A stretch of DNA of 64,000 nt from contig NW_018406089.1 in the NCBI RefSeq assembly GCF_002113885.1, positions 198,351 to 262,350 on the forward strand, written 5' to 3'. The stretch is from Mizuhopecten yessoensis (taxonomy: Eukaryota). The position numbers and the translations under genes were made by a program. Every line of letters begins with the position of its first letter. Position 1 is the first letter of the stretch. Positions 14,660 through 21,362 of this stretch are shown here, piece by piece. Below the pieces are notes generated by a model, which worked only from the letters and a program-made list of their open reading frames with translations, did no database searches and had not been told where the DNA came from.

Positions 14660-16793
14660 ATTGTGCATACTTGTCAACCTTTTTTACAATTTTCATGGGA
14701 GAGATTCTGCGTGCTCAAAATTAAAAACCGCATTTAAAATAAAATGGATAGATATAACCCCCAACCCCACTAACCCGCCCCCACTCCCACAATTTCTCCG
14801 AAAAGGCGAACTGAAAATATAACTATAATATCACTTTAGCCATTTTCATTTACATGATGACATCTAAACTTAGTATGGCTCAATAGATATGTTTCCGCTG
14901 ATTTGAAGAATCTGAAAGGTACACCGGCACAAACCACGAGGAAACGGGGCTATTAATGGTATTAATGGTATCGATAACACCATCAGAGTTACGCATGCCC
15001 GTGAACCGGCGTTACTGTACCGTGAACGGGACAATTTCGGTATTTTGGCGAATATTTGGGCTTAAACCAATATTGGCAGAAAATATGCTAGTTGAAATAT
15101 TTTAGAGTCAACGAGGGTTCTGATTAAATTTCTTCTTCAAACTAGCATTCGTTTCGATAAAATTATATAGACTTTTGAAAATGATATCCAAATCAGGAAA
15201 GTCTTGTTTTGGTAATTATTCTTACCACGGACCAGGGACGTATCGTCGGCCAAGAGTCAAGACCTCGTATCTCGTTTTTTGCAACTTTTCAGGAGAGACA
15301 AAAAATTATCTCTGTTTTTAACTAATTGAGACAGGAATGTAATTTTTTGCAAATTGCTAGCAATAAACATTGCAAGTAAATGGATAAAAAAACATTTGAA
15401 CTTTTTTGTTCACTTGACCTACTTTTACGAGTTACGAGTTTTTGCATCTAAAATGTCTACATTTTTCAAAAGATAAGAGGTTTCTGTTTTCTTTCAAAAT
15501 TCCAATAATGAATTAGGGAAGTTTTAATTGGTACCAGAAGTATTGGATATTATTATACATAATTAGTCAAAATGTTTTTGTCACTGAAATTGCTTTAAAA
15601 ATCACAAGACATTTGTTTTGAAATTAACTTTTAATAACAAAAAATATTAAAACATTTCATGAATGGTCAGACTAGATTCTTAACAGTCAACTGGAATGCG
15701 ATAAAACATTGCTGTACTTATCCGCAGATAATCCCCCCACTTCAATAATTGACTTTATCAATAAAATAAAATGATTATACTTGTACATGTATATTGCTTG
15801 CGTTTTGTTTTTATAATTTTGGGGTGTGGGCTTTGCACGAAACAACTAGAAAACTGACAATTACTATAGATAAGCAAAACGAAAAGGCCAAAATTTGGAG
15901 GGATTATTTGCAACTAAATACGAAAACATTAACTGTCATTGTAAATAAAAATGTGAACAAATACGAACTATAAGTGTAGACAATAATTACTTTTCGTAAT
16001 TTGCAAATCAAAAACTAAAAAACTACTTGCTGAAATTACTACTTCTGCAAGAAGATATTGAAATATCCAATAATACAATTATCATTATAATAAAACATTA
16101 ACAAATCATTATGAACCAAGTAGACAATAACAATTTTGTAATTTGCAAATCAAACACCCAAAAAATACCTGCAGAAGTTGCTACTGTACAATTGGCACGA
16201 CATGAATAAGGAAACTCAATTCAAAAATGATTTAAATACAGTAAATATAATGCATGGCTCTAATAAATGGTAATCGTAATGCACAGTACATTGTAAAAGA
16301 AATAGTTACTAGAAATCAATTCACAGTTTAAAAAGGTATTTAAAAAATATGACTAGAATAATCAATTACATTTGAGCTACTTGCATAATAAAAAATAAAA
16401 CCTATTTGTACACTACAACATGTACATGTATTCAAATTAGGATAAATAGGACGTCAAAAATCAAATTACAATATGCAATGGAACAAATATTTCGCTAATT
16501 ATATAGTCATTTTAAAATTTGGAACATGTTCACCTAGACCATGTAAGGCAACAACAAACATTAGAAACTAATGAAACTATCAACTCTGAAAGAATCGGTT
16601 AACTCATGAAAATATCAACTCTGAAAAAATCAGTTAATTTTAAACATAACACCTCAGATGTCCTCATTCAAAACACTTTAGATTTAGATAATCCCCATAA
16701 GTCTATCCCTTATGTTGTCATTGCGTACAAGCTGTTGCCTATTAGCAGTGTTTATCAATTTAATTCAGTTCAACTCAGCAGAATTGCGAAATA

Positions 16794-19463
16794 CTAATCT
16801 GAGTGAGGCAACGCATCATAGAATCCATGGTAGTCCTTGGGCATGACCTTTTTGAGTTCTTGTAGATGTTTATACTTGCTCTTTTTAATGTTGACTGGGC
16901 AACTGTACAGCTGTGATGTCACCACCCGTGGCTCCTGCCTTCGTGAACGTCGTGGTAGTTCCTGGAACTCTTCGTCATACATCAACTTGTATTCAATTTT
17001 CCCGTCCGGAGTGTACTTGAGTACTCGGATGTGGGTGACGCAGGGATCTCCAACTCTTACACCTGGACGGATTGACGAATAATACTGAACTTCTGAGTAG
17101 TTGACAAAAAACGAGTGATCCAGATATTTAACCTTGTAAGGATTCACTTGACGAGCAGACTCTATAGCTTCTACATAATTGGACGGAATGTAAATTGCCT
17201 TGTCACGGAGACTGCGTTCAATAGTGCTGTGTATGCTGTCACACTCCATCTGTGTGTGTCCTTTCTCCAGAATCTTTTGTAGTATGGTTTTATTGCTGGT
17301 CACCGACAAGTGAAGTAATGCATTGGCCAAGGTGACATTCCTATTTTGGTATGTACAACCGTCACTGTAGATTGTGACATGGTCAGTGTCACCCAATTCG
17401 TTTAGGATGTAGTCACACACACATGAAGCAAAACTGTTTGCTCCGAGTTCCCCTTCTCCCTCATGCCAGAAATAACACACAACATTGTGCGTTGTCAAGT
17501 CATACATAGTAAAGTTATGACATGCTAGTTTGGTCTTGTAGTACATGGCACTCGCTTTTAGACTCGGTGATAACAACACAGCCTGTAAATCTAACGTTAT
17601 GACCTTACCATGTCCGGCATTTGCAGACTCTTTATCCTTCTGTTTTTCGTTTCTCGCACTGGTTTTCTTCTCAATATGTTTATTATATTCCGACTCTTCC
17701 AAATTACCAGCTTCAAACGCACAGTATGTATCACACTGATCCTTTTTGGGATGAAACAAACATTTTTTTTTCACTGATGACACTAGTGAATACTGTGATT
17801 GATAACGACTCTTCGTTTTTTTCTTCACATTGTTCAGTGTATAAGTCATAAAGTTGTTTCACTGATCTGATGCAAGGCTCTAGATACAACTTTGATGTAC
17901 TGGCCCTACAATAATGTGATGGAAGTTTTGGTAAGGAGTCTAGAAATTCATGTGCAAACTCCCTTTTTCGGACGTTGTCAATCTTCTGTCGTCCAGGGGC
18001 ACTGTAGGTGGAGGGAGAGGCATGCATACCAGCCGCTCTGTCAGGGTTTTCATCTAGCGATTGATTAATCCAATTATGAACTGTCCACTCCCCAAGTCCA
18101 AGTGTTGACAGAAACATGTTTTTACAAACCCGATACCGACCCTCGCTCTTTTTGAGGTGATAAGAATAGCTCATATTCTTCCTAGATTTATGTGTTTCAT
18201 TCTGTTTTTCCTCACAATCCACCATTGTGGAAACGTAGATTTTCTTCTGGGACCAGTCCATTTCCCAGAATCCGGAAAAGATGGTCTGCCGGTCCTCGTC
18301 TGTAAAGATTCTACAATGGCGTAGCTTACTTTTGTTACAGAGTTTGGAACAGCAACGTGGTCCTATTTTCCTGGGCTCTTTTGTTAATTCAGTTCGTGTC
18401 CCATCGTTTGTTTTTTTAACACTTTTATAAGACTGGCCTTTCATTCTGGAATCCTTTTTAATATTGCGTTGCCATGTGTTGGGGTCGGCCATTCCTCTTT
18501 TGGCTTTTTATCTGTTAGACGGTCCGGGACTTGTGTTCTCTGAGTTTTCCTCGTTTGCTTCAGTTCGTGCATTATTGTTTACTGGCTGTTCCTCACTGGA
18601 ATCGGAATCATCAAGATCGGCTGAATTCTCGTGACAGTCTAAGTTTATGGGCGGGGTCCAGTCTGGGTCGACATCAGAATTATCTAGAAAATCTACAAGG
18701 TCAAAGTTGTTTTCCAAATTGTAAGTTTCGATGACTTCCTCGACTGTTGTTTCGACGACTTCTTCATTGACGTATGTTCCGACGACTTCCTGACTGACCG
18801 TTGTTCCGACGACTTCCTGACTGACCGTTGTTCCGACGACTTCCTGACNNNNNNNNNNNNNNNNNNNNNNNNNNNNNNNNNNNNNNNNNNNNNNNNNNNN
18901 NNNNNNNNNNNNNNNNNNNNNNNNNNNNNNNNNNNNNNNNNNNNNNNNNNNNNNNNNNNNNNNNNNNNNNNNNNNNNNNNNNNNNNNNNNNNNNNNNNNN
19001 NNNNNNNNNNNNNNNNNNNNNNNNNNNNNNNNNNNNNNNNNNNNNNNNNNNNNNNNNNNNNNNNNNNNNNNNNNNNNNNNNNNNNNNNNNNNNNNNNNNN
19101 NNNNNNNNNNNNNNNNNNNNNNNNNNNNNNNNNNNNNNNNNNNNNNNNNNNNNNNNNNNNNNNNNNNNNNNNNNNNNNNNNNNNNNNNNNNNNNNNNNNN
19201 NNNNNNNNNNNNNNNNNNNNNNNNNNNNNNNNNNNNNNNNNNNNNNNNNNNNNNNNNNNNNNNNNNNNNNNNNNNNNNNNNNNNNNNNNNNNNNNNNNNN
19301 NNNNNNNNNNNNNNNNNNNNNNNNNNNNNNNNNNNNNNNNNNNNNNNNNNNNNNNNNNNNNNNNNNNNNNNNNNNNNCTGTTGCGAAGTAATTGTGTCAC
19401 GTTGTGCGTATCTGATGCGAGCAGATTGTCCTGGCTGCTGCGGAGCCATTCATTGGATGTCAT
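16794..19463 (-). pseudogene. Sola1-type DDD transposase, disrupted
   Basis: Motifs SHYCR, PKKDQCD, DLQAVL, YYKTKL..HNFT.YDL, WHEGEG, YSDGCTYQNRN, GHTQMECDSIHSTIE. In-frame TAA at 18508-18510 and a frameshift at the A9 run (17763-17771). The N-terminus holds a 27-bp coding repeat (QEVVGTTVS)n broken by an assembly gap, so the start (19463 or 19449) is uncertain. Confidence 0.85.
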
Positions 19464-19765
19464 TATTTGGACGAAACTATACTCTTACTGCTCATAAACC
19501 AACCACAGTAAGAACATGTGTAGTGGTCATTTTCAATGTCATACAAATCAGCGTTTTCCGGTATATTGTCTACACAATCAAGATGAAAATGTCTGTCGCA
19601 AAAGTAGCACCTTAACCACTCTACACCATCAATGTCATACAGTACTGTTTGTTCGTTCAATATGGCCTGGTCCTCAAGTTTTCCACAATCTACTGCCGTT
19701 TTGCTACACTCGAAACATTGCCATACTTCATCTAAATCTACAGTCTCTGATCCGGAGTCAGACAT
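19463..19765 (-). CDS. Small acidic PHD-finger-like protein inside the transposon (100 aa)
   Basis: CFEC...WLRCYFCDRHFHLDC...YTCSYC (one ligand pair short of a canonical C4HC3 at the N-terminus is possible). Splice acceptor at 19769 three nt before the ATG; candidate GTAAGT donor at 20378. Confidence 0.7.
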   Translation of the reverse strand: MSDSGSETVDLDEVWQCFECSKTAVDCGKLEDQAILNEQTVLYDIDGVEWLRCYFCDRHFHLDCVDNIPENADLYDIENDHYTCSYCGWFMSSKSIVSSK

Positions 19766-20422
19766 GCCCTAGAACAAATAAAATAATGTTTCAGATATTG
19801 TTTCGTCTTTACTTAAATACATTGTAATAAAGCAGTGTTTTGTTTAAACTGTCAAGATGAATTAATATTAGTATTTTTAACAACACTAGAAACAGAAATA
19901 CTAAAATCACATCACAGTTAACAGCCAAGACTTTATAGAATTCAATAAACTTTGAATATCGATCATAATTGATAAGAAATTAATTCAATGTTGCCCACAG
20001 AATGCTTAAAAAAAATTGTACAATGTCAAAGCCTCGTATCTCCGAGGAAGGTGGAAAAATATTTAAGTGCAAAACCACGTATCTTGATTTAACATCAAAA
20101 TAAGGGTTTTATCCGAGACATAATCTGGTTTCAACTCATTATGCAATAATGTAAAGTACCATTCAAGGAGTAATCTATAGACATACAATCTGAAAGATGA
20201 TTTACAAACCCTAAAATGGCAACAAGGCGGGAAGGGGGTATTTTGGTTGATTTCACTGTGTGCCAAATTGGGGCTATTTACACAATAATAACAATTTGTA
20301 AACCGAAGTACCTTACAGTTGCTTGTAATACATTCTAAAGATATTAATTGTACACTAAATATTAAGTGTTTCACTTACATTAGTGGATTCTTCTTCTGTG
20401 CACCGTCCCAGTTTTTCAATCA

Positions 20423-20562
20423 CATGGATACTTGTAAAGACAAAACCTTGTAACTTAAGATACGAGGTTTTAGCTTTATAAATTATCATCCTCATGGCTA
20501 TTTGTAAAGACAAAATCTCGTAACTTAAGATGCGAGGTTTTAGCTTTATAAATTATCATCCT
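20423..20562. repeat. 70-bp subterminal tandem duplication carrying the TIR core AGATACGAGG
   Basis: Two units 70 nt apart, each containing the quasi-palindrome AAAAyCTyGTAACTTAAGATrCGAGGTTTT. Confidence 0.8.
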
Positions 20563-21362
20563 AGGTAATACGAGGAAAATGTCATGTGGTTTTTCAACAT
20601 GTTCTGATTGGACTAGAGATAAGTGTTTTATACACATTATGAAGCAAGGCGGGAAGAGTATATTGGTGCAAAAAAATCATTTTGGCCAAAAACCGAGATA
20701 CGAGGTCTTGACTCTTGGCCGACGGTATAATCTAATTCCATGTTTTTACCTTTAAATTGTCAATGTAACGAAAATCAGCAGCCATTCAGTAAAGCCTAAT
20801 ACAGTCATGACAAGTATTATCAAATGAAAACTCTATACATGACAGAACTTCTTTGCATTGAATGACATTTTCTTGTGCCATTTTCCCCACTAGTGTCCCG
20901 TTTTGGGTACTGACTACTGTCCCGATTTGGTAGTCAAGCCGGAAAAATGAGTTTTTGGCAGTACGGGGATCCTGACTCTCGGATATTTAACGGACCAAAA
21001 GCAACATAGCTAATTTTGTTCACTTTTTAACAAATCGTTTTAAAATATTGATACGATTGTTATCACTCGTGTAACGGATTGACTAAGTACCTTCCCCACG
21101 AATGTCTGTCCGTAACATATGCGGGCCATATGATGTCAATCACCGTGCTGTTTTTTTTAGCCCAGGTAAATTGTAACGAATTTTAATCGATTAAACGAAT
21201 GTAGGCTACCTGTTCTTCTACATTATTGATACAAGGGGGAACAAAATCGATATATTTACAGACAATACACAAAGCATATAAGTAGACCGCTCTACCTCTA
21301 GATATAGATGCCTGTTCTTATCGATTTCCTCGCCTGCCGTTTCTATAGCGACACGTACGCTA

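Follow-up and report, generated by a model that had tools for sequence, protein, structure and literature searches.

Accessory proteins of cut-and-paste DNA transposons are few and instructive, as the Myb-like protein of PIF/Harbinger elements and the RAG2-like proteins show, the PHD finger of the latter tying V(D)J recombination to trimethylated lysine 4 of histone H3 (H3K4me3). PIF/Harbinger transposons encode a transposase and a Myb/SANT-like accessory protein that is needed together with it. The PHD finger of RAG2 reads H3K4me3 and tunes the recombinase (PMC4411706, PMC10629977). The Sola superfamily of DNA transposons (Bao et al. 2009, as cited in PMC3845634 and PMC4455052) includes Sola1, of which a 4-bp target duplication of the AWWT (AWDT) type is a hallmark (PMC3845634), and curated bivalve Sola1 elements have a mean length of 5445 bp (PMC10294476). 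Reinitiation at a UAAUG stop-start overlap after a long open reading frame (ORF) is documented for SART1, hypovirus CHV1, caliciviruses, and influenza B (PMC10275272, PMC2699510), and the known cases need nearby RNA structure or a motif complementary to 18S rRNA (PMC10275272). Here we describe, within 64,000 nt of the genome of the scallop Mizuhopecten yessoensis (assembly GCF_002113885.1, contig NW_018406089.1, positions 198,351 to 262,350 of the forward strand; this whole stretch is called the window, and coordinates are window positions unless another contig is named), a minus-strand, Sola1-like transposon in which a small ORF predicted to encode a stand-alone PHD finger lies just upstream of a transposase gene of the DUF7869 type. 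A reading made from the letters of the window alone, hereafter the sequence-only reading, had proposed that the two are translationally coupled through a TAATG overlap; our analysis supports the PHD ORF and argues against the coupling.

Results

The Element and Its Ends

Alignment of the termini of the window copy with those of three sister copies, found in the M. yessoensis assembly (988 Mb, 82,659 contigs) on contigs C5376, C5532, and C4995, places the transposon at 15244-20724, which amounts to 5481 bp including an assembly gap of estimated length. The element proper starts and ends with CGTCGGCCAAGAG..., the four copies have these termini in common, and a 41-nt inverted repeat of 95% identity pairs 15241-15281 with 20687-20727. 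The 4-bp target duplication is GTAT/GTAT for the window copy and ATAT/ATAT for C5532 and C4995, and ATAT is present at the one visible end of C5376. Because GTAT at 15240-15243 and 20725-20728 is repeated directly rather than inverted, it falls outside the terminal inverted repeats (TIRs). The AWWT preference is seen as ATAT in three of the copies, whereas the GTAT of the window deviates at the first base, in a sample of only four insertions. By its ends, which consist of TIRs and a 4-bp duplication of the AWWT type, the locus fits the label of a Sola1-like cut-and-paste transposon. The class assigned in the sequence-only reading is thereby borne out by the duplication, and the TIRs that it described are present, although their length is the 41 nt measured here rather than 31 bp. 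GC content is 30% in a putative 5′ intron, 39% in the PHD ORF, 42% in the transposase region, and 28.6% in the 3′ part, a pattern that agrees with coding ORFs amid noncoding surroundings.

A Stand-Alone PHD Finger ORF and Its Family

In each of the three copies that include this region of the element, the PHD ORF is enclosed by the TIRs, and in the window an in-frame TAG (19771-19769) stands just 5′ of its ATG. The predicted protein carries the ligand set C17-x2-C20-x32-C53-x2-C56-x4-H61-x2-C64-x20-C85-x2-C88, which is C4HC3 with canonical PHD spacing, and it matches Pfam PHD (PF00628) at an E value of 9.4e-5, the 22.8 bits falling under the 24-bit gathering cut-off. A word-index search for similar proteins, with this one ORF as the query, gave no match. 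An exhaustive HMMER scan of 1.84 billion representative proteins returned 33 matches, 8 of them at E <1e-10. Thirty-two of these are 78-148 aa long and align nearly end to end, and the sole long match, P0151 (908 aa), was rejected as an unrelated TPR/DnaJ protein; with this spurious match aside, no protein longer than 148 aa carries this PHD type among the 1.84 billion representatives. The small PHD family obtained in this way comprises about 32 clusters at 30-47% identity.

In an alignment of 19 sequences (the window protein and 18 relatives), C17, C20, C53, C56, H61, and C64 vary little or not at all, and Y83, C85, C88, G89, and W90 are kept in most sequences. PF00628 is matched by 14 of the 19 at E values up to 0.01, the best being 2.7e-6. 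Most sequences begin with MS and many end in ...CGW(F/S)M(S/Q/V)GAYDSD with a stop codon within 0-3 residues; both this start (MS...) and this end (...CGWFMSGAYDSD, then a stop) are kept between clusters that are less than 50% identical. The tail of the window protein (SSKSIVSSK) departs from the conserved tail of the relatives (SGAYDSD; ...FMSGAYDSD) at a donor-like site at 19488. An AlphaFold model built on the family alignment reached a pLDDT of 82, and its best matches in the PDB are all PHD fingers, those of ARID5, Alfin-like, Pygo, MLL, MOZ, UHRF1, and BAZ2, with whole domains covered. The structural scores were modest (Foldseek E 0.1-0.7, probability up to 0.96; VIA Z 5.0-5.4 over 50-63 residues), as is usual for small zinc fingers. 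The first loop of the finger is unusually long, with 32 residues and a predicted helix.

Taken together, the alignments and the structural model indicate that the PHD ORF is a real, separate gene whose PHD identity goes beyond chance. The sequence-only reading had described an intact 100-aa PHD-like ORF inside the TIRs and had pointed to profile and structure searches as a check on it, and the Pfam match, the C4HC3 pattern in 18 relatives, and top structures that are without exception PHD fingers all uphold that description. From the fold only, one may conjecture that the protein binds histone H3 tails and has a targeting or anti-silencing role.

The only named relatives of the PHD protein are those of the gastropod Batillaria attramentaria; all others derive from ENA, JGI, and Logan contigs without names, and one and the same protein is often encoded by several of these contigs, by up to 11. 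A search of the M. yessoensis genome found the PHD ORF in three copies of the element only, intact in the window and in C5376 and frameshifted in C5532. A profile search of prokaryote genome contigs with the PHD family found no relative. A stretch of a viral contig of 174,673 bp (IMG/VR, L001:6001-6243) was among the candidates, with 27% identity to the small PHD family and an E value of 3e-5; it is probably just another PHD finger. One Batillaria model, P0194 (BaRGS_00024261), joins the N-terminal half of a related PHD to an acidic, serine-rich tail with a KKRQ-like end. That tail could be the start of a neighboring transposase; its comparison with the acidic region of the window gave an E value of 2.5, and its match to the transposase profile was also not significant.

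The Transposase Gene and Its Damage

The transposase is encoded in two large ORF pieces (18492-17731 and 17849-16794), whose alignment with transposase relatives of 580-615 aa from molluscs, fishes, insects, and springtails runs from end to end; these full-length relatives contain no PHD. The best protein match is a 98% identical M. yessoensis protein, and the 543 homologs (best E 2e-165) come from molluscs, fishes, and insects. Their protein clusters are annotated as DUF7869, with one cluster annotated to 11% as DDE_Tnp_ISAZ013; the Pfam DUF7869 match of the window transposase itself is weak (E 0.0015), and that of the relatives P0003 and P0023 lies above the cut-off.

The relatives share an N-terminal plan that consists of Met, a variable acidic stretch that is often tandemly repeated, KRxK, and then a W..N.K..RM.G..Y motif. 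The window contains, in one frame, 27-nt repeats (QEVVGTTVS), an acidic stretch, R-stop-K-A-K-R-G, and then MADPNTWQRN, and because this order matches the plan of the relatives within a single frame, we regard the repeat and acidic ORF as the N terminus of the transposase. DUF7869 transposases from unrelated species (P0023, P0031, and P0065) each have a different acidic N-terminal tandem repeat before the basic motif, and judged on these proteins, the N-terminal acidic repeat looks like a recurrent, fast-evolving feature of DUF7869 transposases.

An in-frame TAA at 18510-18508 separates the acidic N terminus from the core. At 18510, contigs of the public runs X1 and X5 read A on the coding strand where the window has T; these contigs carry indels of their own. 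The phase offset between the two large transposase pieces is exactly that of a 2-nt deletion near 17761. Because of the TAA and the deletion, the window copy cannot make transposase. More distant DUF7869-type genes are present in the same genome at 24-44% identity (C2474:256633-258198, C3886:3046-4636, C5185:51955-53083, C76734:429613-430761, and C5522:153995-155643), some of them with long apparent open frames of 558-798 codons.

Copies of the element are 97-99% identical, and no intact copy is visible in the assembly. In C4995, 1366 N (C4995:1672882-1674247) extend from ~19820, before the PHD ORF, to the transposase frameshift region at ~17724, and an apparent 818-aa open frame in this copy, considered as an intact transposase, is an artefact of these 1366 N. 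In C5532, 2225 N (C5532:544276-546500) lie over the same central part, with 292 and 296 non-N letters beside the gap (L008), and C5376 is truncated and also carries a frameshift and an in-frame deletion of 411 nt. Two unplaced contigs, C60247 and C22790, hold pieces of the central part (PHD ORF, repeats, and transposase N terminus). Evidently, the assembler failed to resolve near-identical copies of the element.

The TAATG Overlap and the Frame Across the Gap

The ATG of the TAATG opens MTSNEWLRSSQDNLLASDTHNVTQLLRN, which runs into the N gap, and the ATG at 19449 opens MAPQQPGQ... with an in-frame TGA directly before it. The TAATG at 19465-19461, the two ATG-opened frames entering the gap, and the repeat beyond it are all as the sequence-only reading had stated. 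Which frame leads into the transposase depends on the gap length, L: the ATG of the TAATG is in frame at L = 2 mod 3, the ATG at 19449 at L = 1, and the PHD frame at L = 0, and the arbitrary 529 N happen to give L = 1, the phase of the 19449 ATG. The frame across the gap was judged from coordinates and from the open-frame lengths of other copies only. Because the repeats have a period of 27 nt, which is divisible by 3, their register does not affect the phase.

In C5376, the gap edges 19378 and 18848 correspond to 75019 and 75314, which gives L = 294. The PHD ORF (74632), the repeats (75316 and 75343), and the start of the transposase (75442) are all at 1 mod 3 in this copy, whereas the ATG of the TAATG (74934) is at 0 mod 3 and the other ATG (74948) is at 2 mod 3. 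A 681-nt contig of the RNA-labeled run X1 contains 19711-19378 (334 nt) and 54 nt ending at 18828, with ~293 nt between them; its L appears, with less certainty, to be ~273, which is 0 mod 3 and agrees with C5376. This contig derives from another copy, since it is at least 95% like the repeats of the window, against 87% for C5376.

The open frames of C5376 point the same way. Here the frame of the TAATG is open for 92 codons in all, 85 of them from the ATG, and the frame of the 19449 ATG is open for 33, whereas the open stretch in the transposase frame spans 138 codons and so begins inside the gap-equivalent. The corresponding open lengths of the first two frames in C5532 are 36 and 53, as expected from a shift by one base immediately ahead of the gap edge, at which the DNA match of this copy ends 6 nt early. 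From these coordinates and lengths, the ATG of the TAATG is predicted to open a short, out-of-phase ORF that, in the copies that allow a check, does not lead on into the transposase. The proposal that the TAATG couples the PHD ORF to the transposase is therefore not supported, in view of the phase mismatch in C5376, the closure of the frame after 85 codons, and the missing structure and motif described below; the ATG of the TAATG is out of frame in both sequences that are available, one of the outcomes that the sequence-only reading had named as refuting it, although a hypothetical intron within the gap region might save the proposal. The ATG at 19449, which had been thought to fit the repeat equally well, does not do so: its frame closes after the 33 codons, 9 codons beyond the gap edge in C5376, and it was rejected as the start of the transposase.

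A TG is expected after TAA with a chance of ~1/16, so the presence of a TAATG by itself is not beyond chance. Conservation of the overlap could be compared as the sequence-only reading had suggested, and the three genomic copies are 99-100% identical there, which makes conservation uninformative. No TGGGA is present within 135 nt upstream of the TAATG. RNA folding gave a z score of +1.4 for the 88 nt after the overlap and +0.6 for the 95 nt before it in comparison with shuffled sequences (range +0.6 to +1.6), and thus no structure, with only 88 nt readable downstream. Two other routes to the transposase were rejected: stop-codon read-through from the PHD ORF, because its frame is closed by TAA, then at once by TGA, and then by another TGA before the gap, and leaky scanning past the PHD start, because nine ATGs intervene before the TAATG.

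Putative Introns, RNA, and Flanking Features

The putative 5′ intron has the donor AAT/GTAAGT (GT at 20378-77) and the acceptor TTGTTCTAG/G (AG at 19770-69). No joint supports the intron 20378-19769 in any run, and public contigs cross both sites unspliced, so that of this intron, as first proposed, the consensus donor and acceptor stand and read support does not. Nor does any RNA joint leave the donor-like site at 19488. Contigs of RNA-labeled runs have even depth over introns, ORFs, and noncoding parts and extend into sequence that flanks other copies, and in this they behave as DNA does.

The coordinates of all features are collected in Table 1. The 70-nt duplication in the 5′ leader is present as a single unit in one X5 contig, and its copy number differs between copies or individuals. 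One X1 contig and two X22 RNA reads join 15232 to 20727 with TTAA between, and CAGGGACGT beside the joint is also missing from them. The left flank at 15040-15239 is a high-copy repeat with at least 440 candidates at 78-89% identity, and for this reason the joint was rejected as proof of a polymorphic insertion with an empty site; the element-free joint may be a paralog rather than an empty allele.

Table 1. Features of the Sola1-like element in the window, from its 3′ end to its 5′ end
Feature	Position	Strand	Remarks
Target-site duplication GTAT (left)	15240-15243	.	Same GTAT at 20725-20728
3′ TIR	15244-15281	-	41-nt pair, 95%
3′ noncoding part, 28.6% GC	15282-16793	-	No ORF >63 aa; 98-99% identical in C5532 and C4995
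Transposase, C-terminal piece with catalytic core	16794-17849	-	True frame from about 17726 downwards; DUF7869 match weak
Transposase, N-terminal piece with W..N.K..RM.G..Y motif and Cys-rich region	17731-18492	-	Matches residues ~60-330 of relatives
Frameshift, 2-nt deletion relative to other copies	17759-17763	-	X1 and X5 contigs have 2 extra letters behind 17761
In-frame TAA in basic R-K-K-A-K-R-like stretch	18508-18510	-	Frame shared with both neighboring ORFs; relatives have KRxK
Acidic N-terminal extension	18511-18848	-	27-nt (9-aa) tandem units at 18742-18848; three units after the gap
Assembly gap, 529 N, length estimated	18849-19377	.	Arbitrary length
ORF from the ATG of the TAATG	19378-19463	-	28 codons visible; 85 in C5376
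ORF from the second ATG	19378-19449	-	24 codons visible; 33 in C5376; TGA directly upstream
TAATG stop-start overlap	19461-19465	-	Read in the sequence
Stand-alone PHD finger ORF, 100 aa	19463-19765	-	ATG at 19765, TAA at 19465-19463; Pfam, HMMER family, structure model
Donor-like GTAAGA in last PHD codons, phase 1	19487-19488	-	Needed only for a PHD-transposase fusion by splicing
Putative 5′ intron, 30% GC, GT..AG	19769-20378	-	Splice consensus only
70-nt tandem duplication, 5′ leader	20413-20552	-	87% identity; copy number varies
5′ TIR	20687-20724	-	41-nt pair and terminus alignment
Target-site duplication GTAT (right)	20725-20728	.	Pairs with left GTAT

Discussion

We put at roughly 0.6 the probability that this locus is a recent, low-copy, and now defective Sola1-type transposon that carries a stand-alone PHD gene and a DUF7869-type transposase gene in tandem, with the ORF of the TAATG out of phase. 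The first gene would give a PHD protein of ~100 aa belonging to a conserved family of small proteins, and the second would give a DUF7869-type DDE transposase whose N terminus combines fast-evolving acidic repeats with a basic, nuclear-localization-like motif. The transposase would start at an ATG inside the gap region or at one reached via an intron there. By analogy with other multigene DNA transposons, the two proteins are most likely made from separate or alternatively spliced mRNAs, and the PHD protein may serve as a chromatin-binding accessory factor.

Several observations weigh against this reading. No copy is intact across the middle of the element, so the phase argument comes down to one degenerate copy (C5376) and one contig of inferred middle length. 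The frame of the TAATG is open for longer than chance predicts, the probability of 57 unseen open codons after its ATG being ~0.02 at this base composition, and it may be, or may once have been, coding. Other DUF7869 families of the M. yessoensis genome gave no PHD ORF match, and two profile scans of metagenome contigs, with PHD alignments or with P0157, found no relative. Two raw RNA-seq runs of the species, with 1.87 billion letters read from each, yielded 2 and 6 reads on the 5.6-kb stretch.

Of the alternatives, the one that survives best is a single spliced protein, which we nevertheless consider unlikely: the PHD would be the N-terminal domain of the transposase, with GTAAGA at 19488 (phase 1) spliced to an acceptor in the gap region so that the TAA and the short ORFs are removed. 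The PHD and transposase frames do coincide in C5376, but a matching phase has a chance of one in three. The donor-like site stands exactly where the window tail leaves the conserved tail of the relatives, yet those relatives keep residues past the would-be donor and then stop as small proteins, and no spliced read was seen. The Batillaria model P0194 speaks for this reading, in that half of such a PHD is joined to an acidic tail with a KKRQ-like end, but the tail has no significant similarity to the acidic region of the window. The size distribution in the HMMER scan, in which the only match beyond 148 aa is spurious, also argues against a fusion, as do transposase relatives that begin with Met and an acidic region without a PHD.

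We give still less weight to one bicistronic mRNA on which ribosomes reinitiating at the UAAUG would begin the transposase at its true start; frameshifts or an intron in the gap region would then account for the phase mismatch. The TAATG is present, and the documented UAAUG cases provide a mechanism; moreover, the frame of the TAATG in C5376 is open for 85 codons against 33 for that of 19449, so that if either ATG is used, it is that of the TAATG, and the nine ATGs between the PHD start and the overlap mean that a shared mRNA would need some special route. Against this stand the transposase in the PHD frame of C5376 and apparently also of the bridging X1 contig, the end of the TAATG ORF inside the C5376 gap-equivalent, and the failure to see the required structure or 18S motif (z scores of +1.4 and +0.6 and no TGGGA), while conservation of the overlap, in copies that are identical there, lends no help. 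The least likely explanation treats the PHD ORF as a passenger without a role in transposition, which this one family captured as a small host gene or a piece of one: only this family carries a PHD ORF among the detectable DUF7869 elements of the genome, and transposase relatives elsewhere are complete without one, but two of three copies retain an intact ORF despite a broken transposase in every one, its relatives are multicopy within samples (up to 11 contigs per identical protein), as is typical of mobile elements, its start, end, and all metal ligands are kept at 30-47% identity, and no PHD copy lies outside the element in this genome.

If the tandem, two-gene organization is correct, the small PHD family, with its ~32 unnamed clusters, many of them from metagenome or Logan contigs, would mark a transposon and not a host gene. 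The idea of translational coupling, for its part, is weakened. A bolder and, in our view, doubtful extension is that a Sola1 lineage in molluscs and perhaps more widely encodes a minimal PHD chromatin reader that works with its transposase, steering or licensing transposition on particular chromatin much as the PHD of RAG2 works with RAG1, and that the junction of PHD stop and AUG may be part of an unusual expression of multiple ORFs from one mRNA.

The element resembles described Sola1 transposons in its TIRs, its 4-bp AWWT-type duplication, its length of ~5.4 kb, its low copy number, and its one large gene for a DDE-type transposase, and it differs from them in the separate PHD ORF 5′ of the transposase and in its own duplication, GTAT, which does not have A first. 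No paper that reports a PHD ORF for a Sola element turned up in a literature search, nor did one that mentions DUF7869. With the UAAUG systems (SART1, CHV1, caliciviruses, and influenza B), the locus has in common an upstream ORF, at least ~100 codons long, whose stop codon overlaps an AUG; in those systems, however, the downstream cistron is proven and the structure or 18S motif is required, whereas in those scallop copies that allow a check the downstream frame is not that of the transposase.

In function, the nearest parallels are PIF/Harbinger and RAGL elements. PIF/Harbinger elements likewise have two separate ORFs inside one TIR pair, the small one coding for an accessory factor that binds nucleic acid or chromatin; they belong to another superfamily, and their accessory domain is Myb-like where that of the scallop element is a PHD. 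Compared with the Transib-derived RAGL/ProtoRAG elements (PMC4411706, PMC10629977), the transposase families are unrelated, and the RAG2-like protein is large, combines Kelch repeats with a PHD at its C terminus, and is transcribed divergently from the RAG1-like gene, whereas the scallop partner, as predicted, is a bare 100-aa PHD finger encoded on the same strand and just upstream. What the two share is a DNA transposon that carries a DDE transposase and a separate PHD-bearing protein, and the scallop element, if our reading of it is true, would be a second, independent DNA transposon that brings its own chromatin reader.

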